Assembly: GCA_020536535.1 (NCBI GenBank)
Contig: JAHLWZ010000854.1
Location: 1-64,000 of the forward strand
Source of the DNA: Pelomyxa schiedti
Taxonomy: Eukaryota > Protista > Evosea
DNA length: 64,000 bases
Reading direction: 5' to 3'
Shown: positions 3,038 to 45,500 of the stretch, piece by piece
Layout: the number at the start of each line of letters is the position of its first letter
How positions within the stretch are numbered: the first letter of the stretch is position 1
Translations under genes and position numbers: made by a program
Notes under the pieces: generated by a model
The model's database searches: none
Told to the model about the DNA's origin: nothing
The model's input: only the letters and a program-made list of their open reading frames with translations

Positions 3038-5212
3038 ATGGACATAGGCGATGTGATCAGGAAAATAACGTGCCCTTGTTGTTCCTCTTTCTTTCGTGAC
3101 CCAAGGTGCCGTAAATTTGGAATATGTCCTTTAAACCTATTCGTGTTTCCAAACGTCCTCACGCCTGACTCACACCACCAGGCTCCTGCCGTGTTTGCAC
3201 ACTTTGTGCCTCGAGTGCATCACTCGATGCGCGCAATATTCGCCCGGACCTCGACCTCGGCGACGAGTCCCACCCCACCAACATCAACAGTGACGTGCCC
3301 TGTGTGCCACTCTCAGGTCCTTCTCCTCCTACAAAGCAACAACCGAAAAATCGTCAGGCCACTGTCCCCCAGGGGGGTGCCCTGTCGACTGCTGGACGAG
3401 CACCCTGCTCGTTGTTGGGGGTGGGTCACAGCCGCAATGCCCCACAACTGCCGCCGCGCCTCCGCCCGAGTGTTCTGAGTGCGGTTCGCACGACGCCCCG
3501 TGGTGGTGCACATCATGCAGCGCGTTCCTGCATCCACATGAGGAGTTGCTACTGTATTGCAACACTGACAAGTCACCGATTTGTCGTGGCTGCACGTGTG
3601 TGCCTTTTTCTCTTTTGTTAAACACCAAACATTCTATCAGGAAGATCGACCACAAAAACCACGACTTCGTTGTTGTCAGTGACCTGAGCCCAAAGTTCAA
3701 GGAGAACATTTCATCACTTAGTGCCAAGTTGTCATTGCTTCTGGAGAAGGTTTCACTGTCTAAACTCACCGCAATTGTGCGTTCTCGTCCGAATTTATTG
3801 TGAAATGACATTTAAACCACAAACAACAAGGGGTGTTGCAAAAACGCAGAAGAAGCTTCAGAGAAAGTCAAGTCAGAAATACGAACTGAATTTGCCAAGA
3901 TTGTTGCTGTTGTCAATGCCAGGGAGGCTCAACTGCTCTCAGAAGTGAATACAATCACAGAGACTTCCAAAAAGGCATTGTTCTTGTCCCGCGCAATTCA
4001 CACTGACCCTCTTTCAAGACATTCCAAGAAAGCATTGAAGGATGCGACAACAAGACGAAGGTTTTACAGGAGACACAAGAATACGCACAACAGGCAACAA
4101 CGAAGTTCACTGACCTCCAACTTGTGGCTGTCAATGGCACTCTCACACCTCGTCTCAAAAAACTTTGCGATTCTGGTGCTGATACTGAGGCTCTCACACC
4201 AACCGAATTGAAGGCACGTTGCAGTTGCTCTAACCGACTTTGGTTTTTATGCTAATCACTGTACCACCTACGCAACAACAAACAGGTGAGTTTTGAGTGC
4301 GATTCAGATACTATTTGTGAGACAGTTTCATCCCTTGGGTGTCTTGTTCACAATTCATCGGGATGCGGTCTAATCGCAAAGACAACAGCACCTACCACGA
4401 TGAAGACACTCAGACAACTTGCCGCGCCAACGATGGTGCCCTCGATCACACCCCGTCAGGCAGTCAGGCTGTTTGTTGACAACGCAACCGGGAAAGTGTA
4501 CTGGGACAACGGCTTCAACCGCCCACAACTGACAGAGTTCGAAAGCATGACCAGCTTCGTCAACAACACCAACCCGAGACAGTTCACACTCAAGGACGTG
4601 CCCGGCTGCCCCGAAGGCACGTTCCTGGCGGTGCACAACGGCCACGTGTACTGCAACCCAATCAACGAAGCCACGATGACCAAGGTGCGTGTGAGTGACG
4701 GGTCAACAGCAGCAACTGCCCGGCTCCCAAACGCCGGCCACTCTGGCCTGTCGTCGTGGGACTGGCATGGATACAGTGACATGTCCTGGTATGTCGATGC
4801 AGGGGGTGTGCTGTACGTGATCCACGCACCACCAGACAACGGCAACATACATATCACGAGGGTGGACCCCGACTCCCTCGCAATCTTGCAGACGTGGGTG
4901 GTGCCCCGCGTCAAGACACGGACTGGCTTTGCATTTGTTGTGTGTGGGAAGTTCTACTTTGGAAAGTCATGCCGCAGCCAGGAGATCGACGGGGTGTTTG
5001 ACACCACAACTGGTGTTTATGATGACACTTACAGAAACTCACTCCCATCATCACGTGGCGGGTGCGTAGTTCTGACATCGTGGATTCCGTCAACAAACCA
5101 GCTCCTCATCATAGACTTCCCTCCTGAGGGCACAAGGTACCGCTTTTTCATCTTTGACAATGCTGTTGTAAACACACGGGGACAATACCCACAAAGCCAC
5201 AACAACGCCTAA
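3038..5212 (+). pseudogene. TRIM-like RING-B-box-coiled-coil-olfactomedin gene, copy 1; 5' part disrupted, OLF exon 4286-5212 open
   Basis: Colinear with copies at 17161-19497 and 41447-43805. Has a frameshift inside the RING exon (in-frame TGA 3291-3293), a 1-nt loss near 3366-3377, and an in-frame deletion at 3530/3531 fusing B-box1 to B-box2 (SAFL|HPHEE). Confidence 0.7.
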
Positions 5213-17160: not shown

Positions 17161-19497
17161 TTACAAGGCACTGCCCATCTCAGTCACATTGTCAAAGAAG
17201 AAAAAGCTGAATTCTGGTCGGTCAGAAGAGCGGTCAATGACGAGGAGCTGGCTTGTTGATGGAATCCACGACGTCAGCCTCACGTACTTGCCGGATGTCG
17301 GGAGTGAGTTTCTGTAAGTGTCATCATAAACACCAGTTGTGGTGTCAAACACCCCGTCGATCACCCTGCTGGCGTATGTGTTGCCAAAGTAGAACTTCCC
17401 ACACACAACAAATGCAAAGCCAGTCTGTGTCTTGATTCGAGGGACAGTCCACGTCTGCAAGATTGCGAGGGAGTCGGGGTCCACCCTTGTGATGTGTATG
17501 TTGCCGTTGTCTGGTGGTGCGTGGACCACATACAGCACACCCCCTGAATCAACATACCAGCAAATGTCCGTGGCTCCACCCCAGTCCCACGTTGATTTGC
17601 CAGTGTGGCCGGCGTTTGGGAGTGGTGCAGTTGCGACTGTTGACCCGTCACTCACACGCACCTTGGTCATCGTGGCTTGGGTGTATGGGGTGCAGTACAC
17701 GTGGCCGTTGTGCACGGCCTGGTATGTGCCGCCGGGGTAGTGGGGCACGTCCTTGAGTGTGAACTGCCTTGGGTTGGTGTTGCCGACGAAGCTGGCCATA
17801 TTTTCGAACTCTGTCAGTTGTTGACGGTTGAGGGCGTCGTCCCAGTACACTTTTCCAGTTCCGTTGTCAACAAACAGCCTGTGAGCATGACGCGGTGCGA
17901 TCGAGGGCACCATTGACCCCAGCTGTTTGAGTGCCTCCTTCATTGCGGTTGCTGCTTTGGGAATAAGAGTTGATGTTGAGTTGCGAACAATGCGCCCAAG
18001 TGATGAGATTGTTCCACAAACGGCAGTTGAGTCACATTCAAGTCTCACCTGTCCGATTTTGAGTCATTTTACATTTTTGTGGAAACATATACCTTGAATT
18101 CACTCTCGGCACCTGAGTCGCAAAGGTTTTTGACACGAGAAGTGAGAGTGTCATGGACAGCCACAAGTTGGAGGTCGGAGAACTTCGTTGTTGCGAGTTG
18201 TGCGTATTCTTGTGCCTCTTGTGCAGCCTTCGTTTTGTTGTCGCATCCTTCGATGTGTTCTTGGAATGTCTTGCGGGATAAGTGAGTGAAGTTTGGGAGC
18301 AGAGGATAAAAACAGCCCACTTTTTTCGCGGTTTCAGTGATTGTCTTCAGCTCCGATAGCAGCTGTGCCTCCCTGGCATTGACAACAGCAACAATCTTGG
18401 CAAATTCAGTTCGTATTTCTGACTCCACTTGTTTTGAAACTTCATCTGCGGTTTTTAAACACCCCTTTGTCGTTTGTTTAAAACGCCAATGATGGAAATG
18501 GAAGACACACAATTGCGGTGAGTTTCGAATGTGAAATCCTCTCCAGGTGCAATGACAACTTTGAACAGAGTGTGGCTACATTTTCCTTGAATTTGGAGCT
18601 CAGGTCAGAAGAAAACACGAAATCGTGGTTCTTGTGGTCAATCAATCTGATAATGGTGTTTTGATGTTTGTGTAACTGCATAAAGGGTGGTCTCAAGGAA
18701 CACACGTGCAATCACGGCAGATCAATGACTTGTCAGTGTTGCAATACAGTCGCAGTTCCTCATGTGGATGCTTGGAACAAAGTGACGGTTTGGGTGCAGT
18801 GGGTGTGACAGTTGTCTGTGCCCTGAGTTGATCCACAGTCACAACCTGCATCCATGTTAACGAATTGGTACATAACCAGGTGGGGGCGGGAGACAGAAAT
18901 AGACATTGTGAGAAGCAGTCCTCCACGCACGCGAGTGGTGAGCCTTGTCGTCGTCGCACAGGAATACGCTGCACGACGCGCACCACCACGGGGCGTCGTG
19001 CGACCTGCAGTCTCCGCACTCGCGCGGGGGCGCGGCGGCCGTGGTGCCTGGCGGCTGTGATGCGCCCCCAACAGCCGCAAGTGGAACCAGGGCTAACAGG
19101 CTGGTCTTCCATAAGTCCACAGGGAACCCGCCGCTGGGAATTGGTGCCTGTTTGGCGTTAGCACTCGTTTTTTTGCAACTGCAGCAGTGCACAGACGGAC
19201 ACCTGGGAGTGACACACAGGGCACGTCATGGTTGATGATGAGGGCGACGAAGCAGTGGAAGACGTGGAATTAGGCGTAGAGGTTCCTTGTGAACATCGAG
19301 TGATGCACTCGAAACACATACTGTGTAAACACGGCAAGAGCCTGGGGAAGAAAACAAAAAAAAAAAAAAAAAAAGGGCTTAGAACCCCTTCCTTCCCGAG
19401 TACGAGATCAATGGTCTCTGCTGACTAACCTTGGATCACGGAGGAACAAGGAGCAGCGCGGACAAGTTACTTGCGCTATCACTTCCTTCTTGTCCAT
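17161..19497 (-). CDS. TRIM-like RING-B-box-B-box-coiled-coil-olfactomedin protein, copy 2 (apparently intact)
   Basis: RING (CPRC...LLPCLHSMCFEC...CPVC), B-box1 (CGDC...CASC...C...HH), B-box2 (CSKH...C...C..C...H), coiled coil; last exon has OLF motifs LPNAG, WGG.TD, NGNIHITRVDP..L.I.QTW, AFVVCG, FDT.TG. Confidence 0.85.
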
Positions 19498-38658: not shown

Positions 38659-39984
38659 TTACCACAAGAAACTCCCAGGTCGGTCGATCCCATGTATAGT
38701 CCAACCAGGAGCCAGAAACTGAATGCACGCAACAGTATCCCCTGATGATCCCTCAATCAATTTAAGTCTCTGACCACCGGATGCAATGATCAACACGAAA
38801 CCACCACCCGTGGCAAAGGTGCATAGCTCAATATTTTGGAATGTCCTGAGAATGGAATTCTCGTCGCGGCAGTCCCGTATCTCAAGTGACTTTCGGGCAT
38901 TGGAGTGAATTGCAAATAGTGAAGCACTCACTTGGAGGAGCACACTACGAGGAGTGATTTCATCATGGAGTTCCTTTGTCACACCGTTGGGTTGCACGGA
39001 ACAAGCTCTGGTTTGATTGTCATCATCGAAGGTCTCAACAATGAAGAGGTTTTCACCAGCTTTATTCTCCATGACAAGAAAATCATCAACCGTATCACTT
39101 GCTTCAAGTACTTCCAGTGCCCGAAAGTTGGTTGGTAAACTGGTTAGTCCTTTGGTCAAGTACATCTGAGCAACATCAAGAACCAGAAACTGGCCACTTT
39201 GCTGATCTTCCTTGTTCACAACCAACATGGCTGCCTGTGATGGCAGAATTTTGCTGAAGGTCAAAGATTTTATTTCAACATCAAATCCCCCAGCTTCTAT
39301 ACATGCACGACAACCTTCGCTGGCCAGACTTTCAACAACAAATGAAACACTGTGCTCCCCCGATGTAGCCTCAACATACCATCTCCCATTCACACAAAAG
39401 TTGTCATCGTCATTGCCCGGGGGGAGCTCCCGCCGCTTTCCGCTCGCTGTATACTGGATATACTGTCTTCCATCGTCACTCACAAAGACGCGGTCCTTGT
39501 CAATCCAGATCGTGAAGCTCTGCGGCGAAAACAAGGTCTCTCTGTCAACGACAGACACCGCGGTCGTGACTCCCATCAACAAGGGCGAAATTCCGAATCT
39601 GACAACACACCGCTGCACAGTGTCATTCTCGTCGTCGTCGTCGTCGTCGTCGTCGGCGCCCGCTCCTTCTTCCACCCAAGCGTCCACGACGACCCACCTT
39701 GTGCAAGACACCACGCACGAGTCCCACAATTGCATGGCGAAGTTCCCGCCGAACACCCTCGCCGGCGAATTCCTCCCGCACCGCTCCGACTGCGCTGCCA
39801 GCATTATGGCAGCCATTTGGTCTTGTGCCCTCACGCCCTCTGCCAGTGTGATGGTCCCAAGCCACCGTGGTCGCGTCGGTGTCGCCACTGGTGGCGTCGT
39901 TTCCGTCGAAGACCTTTGATCAGTGTCGATGTAGTTTGTCCTCGGTCTTGACTGTGCCGGTTCCTTCGACGCATCTCGCGACAT
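38659..39984 (-). CDS. Intronless lineage-expanded family protein, paralog A (conserved N-terminal module plus divergent beta-rich domain)
   Basis: 441-aa ORF; shares RPRWLGTITLAEGVRAQDQM...RCGRNSPARVFGGN...LWDSCVVSCTRWV with paralogs B and C. Confidence 0.85.
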   Translation of the reverse strand: MSRDASKEPAQSRPRTNYIDTDQRSSTETTPPVATPTRPRWLGTITLAEGVRAQDQMAAIMLAAQSERCGRNSPARVFGGNFAMQLWDSCVVSCTRWVVVDAWVEEGAGADDDDDDDDENDTVQRCVVRFGISPLLMGVTTAVSVVDRETLFSPQSFTIWIDKDRVFVSDDGRQYIQYTASGKRRELPPGNDDDNFCVNGRWYVEATSGEHSVSFVVESLASEGCRACIEAGGFDVEIKSLTFSKILPSQAAMLVVNKEDQQSGQFLVLDVAQMYLTKGLTSLPTNFRALEVLEASDTVDDFLVMENKAGENLFIVETFDDDNQTRACSVQPNGVTKELHDEITPRSVLLQVSASLFAIHSNARKSLEIRDCRDENSILRTFQNIELCTFATGGGFVLIIASGGQRLKLIEGSSGDTVACIQFLAPGWTIHGIDRPGSFLW

Positions 39985-40048
39985 TGCTTGGACTTTTGAT
40001 GACCCCTTTTCGTGGTTAAACTAGGACAAGGTGTCGCTTTTTTCGAAG

Positions 40049-41344
40049 TCAAAAACAGGCAGGTTGCTGTTCGACAGCACTGACATACCAACCACGAGCA
40101 AGGAACTTGACACACGCAACAGGTTTCTCTGATAATGCTTCGATCAGGTACAGATCCCCGCTGAGTGGTATGAGCAGTATGAAACCACCACCTGTGAGAT
40201 AGCTGCAGGGTCCCATATTTGTGACCATCCTGACCATGGAAAGCTCCTTGGTTGTGTCGCTGGCGTCCCAGATCTCAAGTGGCTTATCGGGCCCAGCATG
40301 GATCACGAAGTGCGATGCATCCAGTTGGTGCACCTTCAACAGAGTTGAACTGTATAGTTTCTTGATCACTCCGTTGGGTTGCACAGAATAAAGTGTGGTT
40401 TCATCATCATTGAACGTCTCCACAATAAACACGGTTTTGCCATCTTTATGCTCCAACATAAGACAATGGTCAGAAATATCATCGGGACCAAATACTTCCT
40501 GTGCACAAAAATTGGTCGTGCTCAGGATTTCCATTTTTTTGGTCAGGAACATCTTCTCCACATCAACCACAACAAACTGACCACTGTGTTGATCTTCGCT
40601 GCTCTGTACTATGATCACTGCTTGTGATGGAAAAACAGTGCTGAAGCTCATTACGTTGATTTCAGTATCGCTTCGCGCCCCAACTGGGAAACGGACCGTA
40701 TCATACGCCTCTGTCATCAGGTTTACAATTGTAAATGAAACGCGGTTATCCGTCACTCTGGCTTGCATGTACCACTTCGCGTTCACACAATGATCCACTA
40801 GATCATTTCCGGGCAGCTCCCGACGCACTCCGTTTGCTGTATCCTGAATGTAGTGTCTTCCATATTCGTCGCTCACAAACACGCGGTCTCTGTCGATCCA
40901 AGAAGTCGAACTATTCTCGGCAAACATGTTGCCTATGTCCTCAACAGACACCGCGGTCGTGATTCCCATCAGCAACGGCGAAATTCCGAAGCGTATCAAA
41001 AAGCGCCGCTCCGGCTCCGCCCTGTGTCTTTTCCCTTTTTTCTTCACCCCACCGTCCACGACGACCCACCTTGTGCAAGACACCACGCACGAGTCCCACA
41101 ATTGCCTGGCGACGTTCCCGCCAAACACCCTCGCCGGCGAATTCCTCCCGCACCGCTCCGACTGCGCTGCCAGCATTATGGCAACCATTTGGTCTTGTGC
41201 CCTCACTCCCTCGGCCAGTGTGATGGTCCCAAGCCACCGTGGTCGTTCCGTTGTACTACTAGTTGTTGAACTTCGATTGGTGGCTCTGTTATCGACGTCG
41301 TCTGCCCTCAGTCTTTTCGGTGTCCGTTCAGCTGCCTTCATCAT
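40049..41344 (-). CDS. Intronless lineage-expanded family protein, paralog B
   Basis: 431-aa ORF, tandem with and alignable to paralog A over its full length. Confidence 0.85.
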   Translation of the reverse strand: MMKAAERTPKRLRADDVDNRATNRSSTTSSTTERPRWLGTITLAEGVRAQDQMVAIMLAAQSERCGRNSPARVFGGNVARQLWDSCVVSCTRWVVVDGGVKKKGKRHRAEPERRFLIRFGISPLLMGITTAVSVEDIGNMFAENSSTSWIDRDRVFVSDEYGRHYIQDTANGVRRELPGNDLVDHCVNAKWYMQARVTDNRVSFTIVNLMTEAYDTVRFPVGARSDTEINVMSFSTVFPSQAVIIVQSSEDQHSGQFVVVDVEKMFLTKKMEILSTTNFCAQEVFGPDDISDHCLMLEHKDGKTVFIVETFNDDETTLYSVQPNGVIKKLYSSTLLKVHQLDASHFVIHAGPDKPLEIWDASDTTKELSMVRMVTNMGPCSYLTGGGFILLIPLSGDLYLIEALSEKPVACVKFLARGWYVSAVEQQPACF

Positions 41345-41446
41345 CAGAAAACGAAAACGTTGGCGGTTTCGGCTTCGTCACATTTTGGTTTTTTGATTGC
41401 TTGATGTTTTCAACTGTCAGAAAGTGTCTTCGCTTGTGGAGGTGTC

Positions 41447-43805
41447 ATGGACAAGAAAGAATTGATCGCACAGATAACCTGCCGTTGTTGCTCCTCGTTC
41501 TTCCATGAACCAAGGTTGAACTGCCGTTTTCTTTTCCCAAGTTGACGCCCACAAGGCTCTTGCCGTGCTTGCACACCTTGTGCCTCGACTGTGTCACACG
41601 CTGTTCCTCGCGTACCACAAGCACGACAACCCCGACCGGCGTGTTGCCCACTTTTTCCGTGACGTGCCCCGTGTGCCACTCCCAGGTCAGCGATGTGCCC
41701 TTGTGTGCTTTGTGGGTCAAATAACTCAACAAAAGCAAACGCCAAACAGGCCACAGTCCCACCCGGCGGATTCGCAGTCGACGTCTGGAAGAGCAGCCAG
41801 CTGGATACGCTGGCGCCAATCATAGCAGGTTGCGGGCCACAATCGCCGCCACCAGGCACCACGGCCACTCCCCCGCCCGAGTGTGCCGAGTGCAGGGCTC
41901 ACGACGCCCCGTGGTGGTGCGCGTCGTGCAGCATGTTCTTGTGCAACGACGACATGGCGCACCACTCACGTGCGTGGAGGACGGCTTCTCACAAGGTACT
42001 TCTTGAAAAAAAAAAAAAAAACAATTCCCTCAACCTTATTCACTCCATGCGTGGATGTGGATACAGGTTGTGACGGTGGATCAACTCAGGACACAGACGG
42101 ACGCTGTGTCTCCCATGTCGTACAAACCGGCACTGTGTTACAAGCACCCGCAAGAGGAGCTCCTGTTTTATTGCAACACTGACCACTCGCTGATTTGCCG
42201 TGATTGCACGTGTGCCACTCTCTGTCTTCCTGTGCTTTTACTTAATGGGCGGTATACATCGTTCAGGTTGGACGACCACAAGAACCATGACTTTGTTGTC
42301 TCCATTGACCTGAGCTCCAAATTCAAAGAGAACATTGGTTCACTCTGTTCGATGTTGGTATCGCACTTGGAGAAGGTTTCGCTTTCGAAACTCACTGCAA
42401 TTGTATGTGCCGTCCCTTCTCGTGGGACTTCTTCCATTCTTGTTCAATCTATTAGCCATCCTAAGACAATCAAGGGGTGCTGCAAAAACGCTGAAGAAGT
42501 TCAAGAAAAAGTGGAGTCAGAAATACGAACTGAATTTGCCAAGATTGTTGCTGTTGTCAATGCCAGGGAGGCACAGTTACTCTCGGATCTTAAGGCAATC
42601 ACAGATTCCGCAAAGAAGGTATGTTTCTGCTGTCGGGCCAGAGCCATCACGATGTTTGATGTCCCACTGACAATTTTTACACTTCAAGACATTCCAAGAA
42701 AACATTGAAGGATGCGACAACAAGATGAAGGTTGTACAAGAGGCACAAGAATACACACAACTGGTAACAACGAAGTTCACTGACCTCCAACTTGTGGCTG
42801 TCAATGACACTCTCTCATCTCGCGTGAAAAAACTTTGCACTGACGTTCCAACACCCAATAATTTGAAAGTATCAAGACTTTTCTTCTGTTTGAAAGCTGC
42901 TCACAACCAAACAATAGGTGAGATTTGACTGTGAGTCAGCTGCTATATGTGGAAAAATCTCTTCGTCACTCGGACGTCTTGTTCACAATTCAGCAGCAGC
43001 AGGCACCCTTATTACTGCCAAATCAACACTGATGATGAAGACACTCAAACGACTTGACACATCGATGGTGCCCTCGGTCACACCCCGTATGGCACAGAGG
43101 CTATTTGTTGACAACGCAACTGGGAAAGTGTACTGGGACGGTGGCTTCAACCGTCCACAACTGACAGAGTTTGCAAACATGGCCAGCTTCGTCAACAACA
43201 CCAACCCGAGACAGTTCACACTCAAGGACGTGCCCGCTTTCCCCGAGGGCCCTTACCAGGCCGTGCACAACGGCCACGTGTACTGCACCCCGTTATTCAC
43301 ACCCACGATGACCAAGGTGCGTGTGAGTGACGGGTCAACAGTCGCAACTGCACCACTCCCAAACGCCGGCCACTCCAGCAGCTCAGCGTGGGACAAATGT
43401 TGTTACTCGGACAACTGCTGGTATGTTGATGCAGGGGGTGTGCTGTATGTGGTCCACGCACCACCAGACAACGGCAACATACACATCACGAGGGTGGACC
43501 CTGACAACCTCGCAATCTTGCAGACGTGGGTGGTGCCCCGCGTCAAGAAGACCACTGGCTTTGCATTTGTTGTGTGCGGGAATTTCTACTTTGGCAAGGC
43601 ATCGAACAGCAGGGAGATCGACGGGGTGTTTGACACCACCACCGGTGTTTATGATGACACTTACAGAAACTCACTCCCGACTTCGGGCACGTTCATTCTT
43701 CTGATTTCTTGGATACCATCCACAAACCAGCTCCTCGTCGTCGACTGTCACCCTGAGAACTTCGATAATTGCTACGTTTTCCTGTTTGACGATGTGGCTC
43801 TGTGA
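41447..43805 (+). CDS. TRIM-like RING-B-box-B-box-coiled-coil-olfactomedin protein, copy 3 (apparently intact)
   Basis: Exons join in frame through GT-AG introns at the same positions as copy 2; OLF exon 42918-43805. Confidence 0.85.
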
Positions 43806-43829
43806 GAAAAAAAAAAACCCACAACATTT

Positions 43830-44125
43830 TCCAGTGACCTGGCAGAGTGAAAGACCGTCTGGTGGCCAGTAACGATCATATTAGAAGTGTGAGTGCCTCA
43901 CAAGAGGCACCCTCCACGGTTTATTCAACGGATTGTACTGATAAGGGTATGACTGTAGTCCCATATCTCTGTGTGCGAAGGGAGAATAGTGACTCTAGAC
44001 AGAACGCCAATTTCTGGTCCATTAGGATCTCCTTGGTGATTCCATTGGTTACACAAAACAGACTCTGGTTACCCAAGCTCCCAACTATGAAGAATTTTTG
44101 AACAAAAGATGTCTTCAGCATCTCA
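43830..44125 (-). pseudogene. Decayed C-terminal remnant of another member of the intronless family
   Basis: FFIV...LFCV.NGITKEI...SLFSL, then frameshifted EIWD and F.LPG.W-like pieces with stops, colinear with the C-termini of paralogs A-C. Confidence 0.5.
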
Positions 44126-44174
44126 TGGTTATTTCGCGTTTCTTCAGAGAAATTTTCAGAACATCAAAGTGCAT

Positions 44175-45407
44175 TCAACACATGGAACTCCCGTGTTGGT
44201 ACATACTTTGGATCACCCAACCAGGAGCAAGAAACTGGATGCATGCAACAGTATTCCCCTATGATGCCTCCATCAATTTGAGGCCCTTACCCTCAGACAT
44301 AACAAGCAATATGAATCCACAGCCTGTGAGGTAGTTGTAGCCTGCAGCATTTTGGAGGATCCTGGGTGTGGGCTTCTCCCTGAGAGTGTCAAAGTAGTCC
44401 CATATCTCAAGTGAAGCTCGTTCCCGGCAGTTAATTGAGTAAAGTGACGCACTCACTTGGAATAGGACACTGCCGCTGTAGGTGCATCTGTAAAGTTTCT
44501 TTGCCTCTTGGTTGGGTTGCACAGAAAAAACCCTGGTTTGGGCATAGTTGCAACTCTCTACAATGAATATACTTTCACCAGCTTTGTTCTCCATCACGAG
44601 AAAAGAATCCACTTTTTCATTGTGTACTGGTGGTGGTGAGGCAAAGCTTGTCGTGTGCAGAACTTCCAGTTTTTTCGTCAAGTACATTTGAGCGACATCA
44701 ACAACCACAAACTGACCACGAGTGGGATCCTCCTTGCTCTTGACCATTATCACCGCCTCTGATGGAACAGTGCTGCTGAAGTTCATTGACTTGATTTCAA
44801 CATCAAAAGTGCCGTCGAGAAAGCAGACTGGAGGCTCTTCCTCTCTCTTCAGACTTGCAATAACCAAGGAAACTCCATGATCCTCTGATGTGGCTTGCAA
44901 ATACCACTTCTCGTTTACACAAAAGTTTGGTTCATTGCCCCGAGACAACACCCTATCTTCCCCAGTTGTTGTATCACGGAGGTACCTGTTTCCCATGGCA
45001 TTCACACAGACACGATCCTTGTCAATCCAGCGTGTTGCACCGTAAGCTTCAGCAAAGAGCGCCTCCTGTGGTGCAACAAACACAGCAGTCGCGATTCCCA
45101 TAAGCAAAGGCGAAACCCCAAATCTGGTAATACACCGCGCCCACGGTCCTCCTCCTTTGTTTGCCACCAACGAATCCGAGATGACCCACCTTGTGCAAGA
45201 CACCACGCACGAGTCCCACAATTGCCTGGCGACGTTCCCGCCAAACACCCTCGCCGGCGAATTCCTCCCGCACCGCTCCGACTGCGCTGCCAGCATTATG
45301 GCAGCCATTTGGTCTTGTGCCCTCACTCCCTCGGCCAGTGTGATGGTCCCAAGCCACCGTGGTCGTTCCGCTGTGGTACATGTCGGGGAGGACGTTTCGT
45401 CCCCCAT
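44175..45407 (-). CDS. Intronless family paralog C with a premature TAG at 44259-44261 (truncated by 27 aa or a young pseudogene)
   Basis: After the TAG the frame continues GNTVACIQFLAPGWVI..., matching paralog A GDTVACIQFLAPGWTI, to TGA at 44175. Confidence 0.8.
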
Positions 45408-45500
45408 CAGCTGATTTCCAGGAAGGAATTCCACGCAAAACCAATTCACATTTAAACATTAAAATTATCAGGGACAGGCGTGGTGCTGGGGAAAGTACTA

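Follow-up and report, generated by a model that had tools for sequence, protein, structure and literature searches.

MHC-type multigene families combine concerted evolution with diversifying selection, and primate TRIM5 (TRIM5alpha), which belongs to a set of genes expanded by duplication, carries its selected sites in the B30.2 loops of its binding surface. A comparable arrangement is described for the finTRIM proteins of fish, whose positively selected sites belong to those loops of B30.2 that make up the binding surface (PMC2657112). The top face of the propeller is considered the probable site of interaction in animal OLF proteins (PMC4463452, PMC4488277), and among Olfm1 orthologues this is the more conserved face (PMC4463452). 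Here we describe a family of TRIM-like-OLF genes in the amoebozoan Pelomyxa schiedti, three members of which lie in the window, the whole stretch of 64,000 nucleotides of contig JAHLWZ010000854.1 (contig C854) that was analysed. The terminal OLF exon of each of these genes holds nine variable patches on a conserved scaffold, and the top-face loops to which the patches belong are under recurrent positive selection.

The closest functional analogue would be the B30.2 loops of finTRIM and TRIM5. On both sides there are multi-copy proteins of the RING-B-box-coiled-coil (RBCC) ligase type, putatively so in P. schiedti, that expanded by duplication, and the selected sites are found in loops of one C-terminal binding surface over a conserved scaffold. 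The vertebrate surface is built on a B30.2/PRY-SPRY β-sandwich, whereas that of the amoebozoan protist is built on a five-bladed OLF propeller, and an antiviral role is only putative here. With the animal OLF proteins (noelin/Olfm1, myocilin, latrophilins, and gliomedin) the P. schiedti proteins share the fold and a coiled coil ahead of the OLF domain, the latter putative in our case. The animal proteins are secreted or membrane-bound, glycosylated, mostly disulfide-clasped, and calcium-binding, whereas the P. schiedti protein starts with a RING-like finger at its N-terminus, where inspection revealed no obvious signal peptide. The top face of the P. schiedti OLF domain is its most variable surface, opposite to what is seen in the Olfm1 orthologues. 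As in the MHC-type families, conversion appears to homogenize the scaffold while the selected sites escape and the silent divergence adjacent to them is raised, although the fold and the cellular role are different and paralogues are compared here, not alleles. The term antibody-like, under which an original prediction made from the letters of the window had placed these exons, is valid as an analogy only, and the assembled loci and pre-assembled contigs analyzed gave no sign of somatic diversification.

The proteins encoded by the three window copies are about 70% identical. Within the OLF part, 50 of the 62 columns in the nine patches are variable, compared with 23 of 181 elsewhere, and columns with three different residues number 26 in the patches and one outside them. 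A runs test on the variable columns gave z = -4.4, with none of 20,000 permutations equally extreme, and the DNA identity is 92.3% in the scaffold versus 59.1% in the patches. The same contrast between patches and scaffold is present across 15 paralogues of the same genome. Most of the patch variation is located at single hypervariable positions (residues 126, 212, 259, and 277, numbered in the OLF exon of gene 3), which are flanked by conserved residues such as W158. The original prediction had described hypervariable patches in a nearly invariant framework; the clustering is real and far from chance, but the scaffold does vary at its silent sites, with synonymous differences per synonymous site (pS) of 0.17–0.30.

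Goldman-Yang site models were fitted with a purpose-written program to 15 sequences and 243 codons. The one-ratio model M0 gave a nonsynonymous to synonymous rate ratio (omega) of 0.43. Comparison of M2a with M1a resulted in a likelihood-ratio statistic of 88 (p = 8e-20), with omega2 = 3.7 for a fraction p2 of 8.8% of the codons, and comparison of M8 with M7 in a statistic of 108. About 8–12% of the codons have an omega of about 3–4, whereas the strands and the bottom-face loops (A-B and C-D) are under purifying selection with an omega of about 0.1. Six data sets simulated under the M1a null returned statistics of 0–3.7 and the input parameters were recovered. Thirteen sites have a posterior probability above 0.95, of which 12 are inside the nine patches as originally delimited (hypergeometric p = 3e-7), and the 13th, residue 80, shares a loop with patch 2. 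Eight of the selected sites are positioned in top loops and five at strand ends adjoining top loops, with none in the bottom loops. Because recombination can inflate such tests, the models were repeated with partitions, without gaps, and by clade. When three segments were each given their own tree, the statistics were 16.3, 30.9, and 28.8 (all p ≤ 3e-4); removal of the gapped columns gave 82, and the two clades run separately gave 23.8 and 48.6, with overlapping candidate sites (Fisher p = 1.2e-6); sites 60, 80, 107, 157, 212, 261, 277, and 283 are candidates in both clades. Even the most similar pairs of copies (L002/L019b, L005/L008, and L016/L003b) have different residues at site 259. Diversifying selection, which had been proposed from the patches, is therefore borne out by the M2a/M1a comparison and is robust to partitioning, gap removal, and the clade split.

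An AlphaFold2 model was calculated with the paralogue alignment as input. It has a predicted local distance difference test score (pLDDT) of 83 and a predicted template modeling (pTM) score of 0.81, with residues 1–37 disordered, and contains 19 strands in addition to an N-terminal strand. The best Foldseek matches are the OLF structures of noelin, myocilin, latrophilin, and gliomedin, with template modeling (TM) scores of 0.75–0.82 when normalized to target length, and the family profile matches the noelin and myocilin structures, with E = 5.5e-28 for noelin. The strand order corresponds to five blades of four strands each, with the N-terminal strand closing blade 5. Along this order the loop types alternate strictly: the D-A and B-C loops are all variable and comprise the nine patches plus residues 183–185, whereas the A-B and C-D loops (DNATGK, NG, SDGST, AGG, DPDNLA, CG, TTTG, and PSTN) are conserved, the exception being the C1-D1 helix loop, which is moderately variable. 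The mean entropy is 1.03 bits in the top loops, 0.37 in the bottom loops, and 0.48 in the strands (top versus bottom, p = 1.4e-5). Two landmarks orient the propeller. C220 aligns with the cysteine of the noelin AFIICG motif; the intramolecular disulfide of noelin is numbered Cys227-Cys409 (PMC4463452) and sits on the bottom face (PMC4488277). In the alignment, the counterpart of patch 5 is the long B-10/C-11 loop of the solved OLF structures, which caps the top entrance of the central cavity (PMC4488277). By this topology all nine patches are positioned in the D-A and B-C loops that are predicted to form the top face. That the patches would share one propeller face had been suggested beforehand, and it agrees with the conserved bottom loops and their lack of selected sites. 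The glutamate that precedes AFIICG in noelin, which we take to be a calcium ligand, is replaced by Phe at residue 215 of the gene 3 OLF exon (window 43560) and by Tyr in some copies, whereas D171 of the triad of acidic or amide calcium ligands is retained. If that glutamate is a ligand, the P. schiedti proteins have probably lost the buried calcium site found in animal OLF domains.

Recombination among the paralogues was detected by a triplet test of the 3SEQ type with exact p values, the best mosaic having p = 5e-12 (1e-8 after correction) and consisting of L009 or L011 with an L006-like tract at codon columns about 100–258. The identity of L011 to L006 in segments 1, 2, and 3 is 77, 93.5, and 75%, respectively, and that of L011 to L009 is 93.5, 87.5, and 90.6%; L006 and L009 are neighbors on one contig. 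The conversion tracts are about 300–480 bases long and contain several loops each, indicating that conversion reshuffles blocks of loops and not single patches, and patch trees and scaffold trees mostly recover the same clades. Shuffling by gene conversion had been put forward as a source of the patch differences; recombination is indeed found, but in tracts of several hundred bases that are not patch-sized. A pairwise homoplasy index (PHI) test over all positions gave p < 0.001, a value possibly caused by correlated changes within codons and not used as evidence.

At four-fold sites of identical codons, the silent divergence is 0.33–0.44 at the patches and up to two codons from their edges, compared with 0.21 farther away, and it declines with distance from the patch (Spearman rho = -0.29, p = 0.0015; Mann-Whitney p = 7.5e-4). 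The RBCC exons have a four-fold silent divergence of 0.29–0.40, a pS of 0.45–0.50, and a ratio of nonsynonymous to synonymous differences per site (pN/pS) of 0.33–0.40. Conversion appears to hold the scaffold at roughly half the silent divergence of the other parts of the gene. Codon bias was ruled out as the reason for the low scaffold value, the GC content at third codon positions (GC3) being alike (0.65–0.70) in scaffold, flanks, and patches. The simplest reading is that the scaffold is under concerted evolution, whereas selection preserves old divergence at and beside the selected codons, although a local mutational process might also raise silent divergence near the patches.

The three OLF exons of the window translate as open frames of 295–308 residues and match the Pfam OLF profile PF02191 (cut-off 23.9 bits) with scores of 84.2, 94.8, and 100.1 bits. 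They had been listed in the original prediction by bare coordinates that suggest the forward strand; all three are open frames with an OLF domain, but the exon at 17161–18048 is on the minus strand. RING and B-box motifs are seen in open reading frames (ORFs) upstream of every one of these exons, including that of gene 2. Pfam profiles were run against individual exons and the continuity of the frame between exons was checked by script. The B-box 2 exon matches PF00643 with 26.4 bits (cut-off 24.1), whereas B-box 1 is weak at 17.6–21.1 bits. In gene 3 the start codon opens the first half of the RING ('ITCRCC..FHEPR'), and by frame reading a Cys/His-rich RING-like pattern spans two exons. RNA contigs define GT..AG introns of gene 3 at 41994–42064, 42210–42266, 42403–42474, 42616–42685, and 42869–42917, the last of which agrees with the start at 42918 that had been proposed for the OLF exon. 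A 687-base RNA contig from a single-cell transcriptome connects 42532–42615, 42686–42868, and 42918–43337 and thereby places the putative coiled-coil exons (42475–42615 and 42686–42868) and the OLF exon in one spliced mRNA, with the frame open throughout. Gene 3 is transcribed and spliced.

The genome searched is the P. schiedti assembly of 52,367,397 bases in 5337 contigs, which is a co-assembly of seven micromanipulated cells (PMC8887013). A six-frame search resulted in 28 OLF family matches, comprising 14 intact full-length OLF exons, four partial copies, and several fragments broken by stops or frameshifts. Two of the partial copies are cut by contig ends, and another, L003b, is a rearranged OLF-only copy within contig C575. 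Contig C854 carries four copies, the fourth just outside the window. A word search of 5.8 billion proteins returned seven proteins only, probably all from the P. schiedti genome itself, indicating that the expansion is lineage-specific at this level of similarity. For OLF domains in Amoebozoa our literature search gave one incidental mention and no dedicated paper. The sequencing runs were analyzed as pre-assembled contigs, in which rare variants are invisible. In the DNA runs, scaffold blocks reach a summed depth tens of times that of unique flanks, an excess that fits many copies sharing scaffold words and is not a copy number, and the differences from the window concentrate at the patches. 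OLF-only partial copies or fragments are found near intact genes on contigs C575 (L003, 2369–3281), C342, C143, C4 (418077–418836), and C812 (97496–97883). The C575 fragment begins 84 bases past the stop of a complete gene, which leaves no room for RBCC exons; such fragments could be decaying copies or donors in gene conversion. DNA run X2 of the same sample contains a variant of L003 that differs by one base and exchanges Asp for His at the selected codon 259 (window about 43690; L028/C575:2186–2212). Either an allele or a copy missing from the assembly could account for this variant, as could a difference between cells.

Taken with the gene architecture, the OLF domains probably serve as the target-binding ends of TRIM-like RING E3 ligases, which form a lineage-specific family in this anaerobic amoeba and a germline-encoded repertoire tracking fast-changing ligands. 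In such a protein the RING would recruit a ubiquitin-conjugating enzyme, the putative coiled coil would dimerize, and the OLF top face would bind a substrate, which the RING would then ubiquitinate. The ligands tracked by the repertoire would most plausibly be non-self proteins of viruses or of intracellular or ingested prokaryotes, and its diversity would arise by duplication, point substitution under selection, and conversion between paralogues and not by a somatic mechanism. We put forward more tentatively, as a possibility that we hold to be somewhat doubtful, that an amoebozoan has independently built a cell-autonomous immune repertoire in the style of TRIM5 and finTRIM, with about 20 or more RING E3 ligases whose cytosolic OLF top face would act as a sensor for viruses or cytoplasmic prokaryotes and would be kept diverse by positive selection and block-wise conversion.

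Several points weigh against the target-binding reading. Substrate binding, ubiquitin-ligase activity, and an immune role remain putative, as does the coiled-coil region between the B-boxes and the OLF domain. The Pfam RING models score 20–22 bits, under their cut-offs, which we attribute to the intron that splits the RING domain and to the exons being searched one by one. The face assignment is topological, being derived from the strand order and the two published landmarks and not from coordinates. The site models were run with our own code, in which branch lengths were optimized under M0 and then fixed up to one scale factor, and recombination and multi-nucleotide mutations can inflate both the tests and omega. 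The patch-wide Nei-Gojobori pN/pS is about 0.8 (0.3 in the scaffold; 0.3–1.8 in close pairs), and an excess over 1 is limited to a few close pairs and to individual sites. This ratio does not exceed 1 because the patches include conserved residues, and together with the sites identified by the models it indicates that selection acts on particular positions and not on whole patches. The PHI test is not significant when restricted to third positions (p = 0.21) or to the scaffold alone (p = 0.20). As the assembly pools seven cells, some of the paralogues are possibly alleles, L016 and L003b being 97% identical.

The patch-wide ratio of about 0.8 would also be expected from relaxed constraint, where surface loops tolerate change around a constrained core with no adaptive diversification. 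Patch 7, which is variable without a significant site, fits this explanation, and the loops of solved OLF domains are likewise the most divergent parts between family members (PMC4463452, PMC4488277). We nevertheless consider relaxed constraint quite unlikely, since the nearly neutral model M1a is rejected for the full data as well as for each partition and each clade (omega 3–4.4), the bottom-face loops are equally exposed yet conserved, and the same codons, such as that of site 259, change even in the closest pairs. Selection could instead be driven by endogenous targets, with paralogues specialized on host substrates such as fast-evolving families or transposon and retroelement proteins, or with a function in self/non-self recognition between amoebae and not in defense. 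The selection signature is silent on the identity of the ligand, and another three-copy family is interleaved with the OLF genes at 38659–45449. Housekeeping substrates are also common among TRIM proteins. A one-off specialization would account less well than an ongoing arms race for the recurrent change of the same sites in independent clades and in the closest pairs. This argument against endogenous targets is indirect, but they appear unlikely to us.

Active targeted diversification would be antibody-like in the true sense, with somatic or nucleus-to-nucleus hypermutation, or templated conversion from the OLF-only fragments, operating within one multinucleate cell or population. The fragments and pseudogenes beside intact genes on the five contigs named above could serve as templates, the silent divergence is higher at the patches and up to two codons away, and the L003 variant was seen at read level in the same sample with its single change at a selected codon. 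All variants examined are stable assembled germline loci, however, the patch trees largely follow the scaffold trees, and conversion sparing the selected sites accounts equally well for the higher silent divergence, all of which makes an active mechanism very improbable. P. schiedti feeds on prokaryotes. It also forms an obligate consortium with a methanogen, its one archaeal symbiont, and two bacterial symbionts (PMC10579272). These organisms and viruses are the obvious candidate ligands of the repertoire. The amoeba has to recognize the prokaryotes inside its cell and either tolerate them or keep them in check, which makes the TRIM-OLF genes worth examining for such a function.

Most of the recognition families known to evolve under diversifying selection come from animals and plants, and few have been described in free-living protists; the genes described here are a candidate for an immune-type repertoire in an archamoeba. 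New to this work are the tests for selection, the assignment of the variable face, and the analysis of conversion. Work on the OLF propeller has so far been confined almost entirely to animals, where it is a secreted domain whose ligands are poorly known. If the proposed reading is true, OLF would also be an intracellular and rapidly adapting binding module, and our data point to the top face as its binding surface. The homogenized scaffold and preserved loop divergence make up a compact case of concerted evolution opposing diversifying selection. The coordinates of the genes, exons, and loops are collected in Table 1.

Table 1. Features of the TRIM-like-OLF genes in the window, with the top-face loops of the gene 3 propeller
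Feature	Residues	Position	Window coordinates	Strand	Basis or observation
TRIM-like-OLF gene 3		start codon to stop	41447..43805	+	frame reading, Pfam RING/B-box matches, RNA contigs
Gene 3 terminal exon		disordered linker of ~50 residues, then OLF five-bladed propeller	42918..43805	+	PF02191 84 bits
Gene 1 terminal OLF exon		gene start codon at 3038	4286..5212	+	PF02191 100 bits, alignment
Gene 2 terminal OLF exon		RBCC exons upstream to about 19500	17161..18048	-	PF02191 95 bits
Patch 1	58–60	loop from N-terminal closing strand to strand A1, top	43089..43097	+	site 60, P(omega>1) = 0.91
Patch 2, widened to whole loop	75–80	B1-C1 loop	43140..43157	+	selected site 80; mean entropy 1.98 bits
Patch 3	107–114	D1-A2 loop	43236..43259	+	selected site 107
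Patch 4	124–129	B2-C2 loop	43287..43304	+	selected sites 126, 128
Patch 5	153–167	long D2-A3 loop	43374..43418	+	selected sites 157, 163
Additional loop, outside the original list	183–185	B3-C3 loop	43464..43472	+	moderately variable
Patch 6	209–212	D3-A4 loop	43542..43553	+	selected sites 211, 212
Patch 7	227–233	B4-C4 loop	43596..43616	+	variable, without a site at P > 0.95
Patch 8	255–261	end of D4-A5 loop and start of strand A5	43680..43700	+	selected sites 259, 261
Patch 9	277–286	tip of B5-C5 hairpin, length varies	43746..43775	+	selected sites 277, 281, 283

The linker that precedes the propeller of gene 3 (window 42918–43070, the first 50 residues of the OLF exon) is disordered, with a pLDDT below 50, rich in Ser, Thr, and Ala, and not constant in length. 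The GC3 of this linker is as low as 0.37, compared with 0.65–0.70 in the propeller part of the exon. In gene 1, an apparent in-frame deletion within window 3038–3600 fuses two half domains end to end, the first of B-box 1 and the second of B-box 2 ('CSECGSHDAPWWCTSCSAFL' followed by 'HPHEELLLYCNTD'), leaving a single chimeric B-box. The second three-copy family consists of single-exon ORFs at 38659–39984, 40049–41344, and 44259–45449, all on the minus strand, which encode 396–441 residues, are 50–53% identical, and have no Pfam match. As they are interleaved with gene 3, two expanded families share one cluster. Near the beginning of the window, an ORF of 516 residues on the minus strand (1116–2666) matches BTB_2 (KCTD-type) with 67 bits, and its long, repetitive C-terminus contains three similar segments and a faint Ig_2 match.

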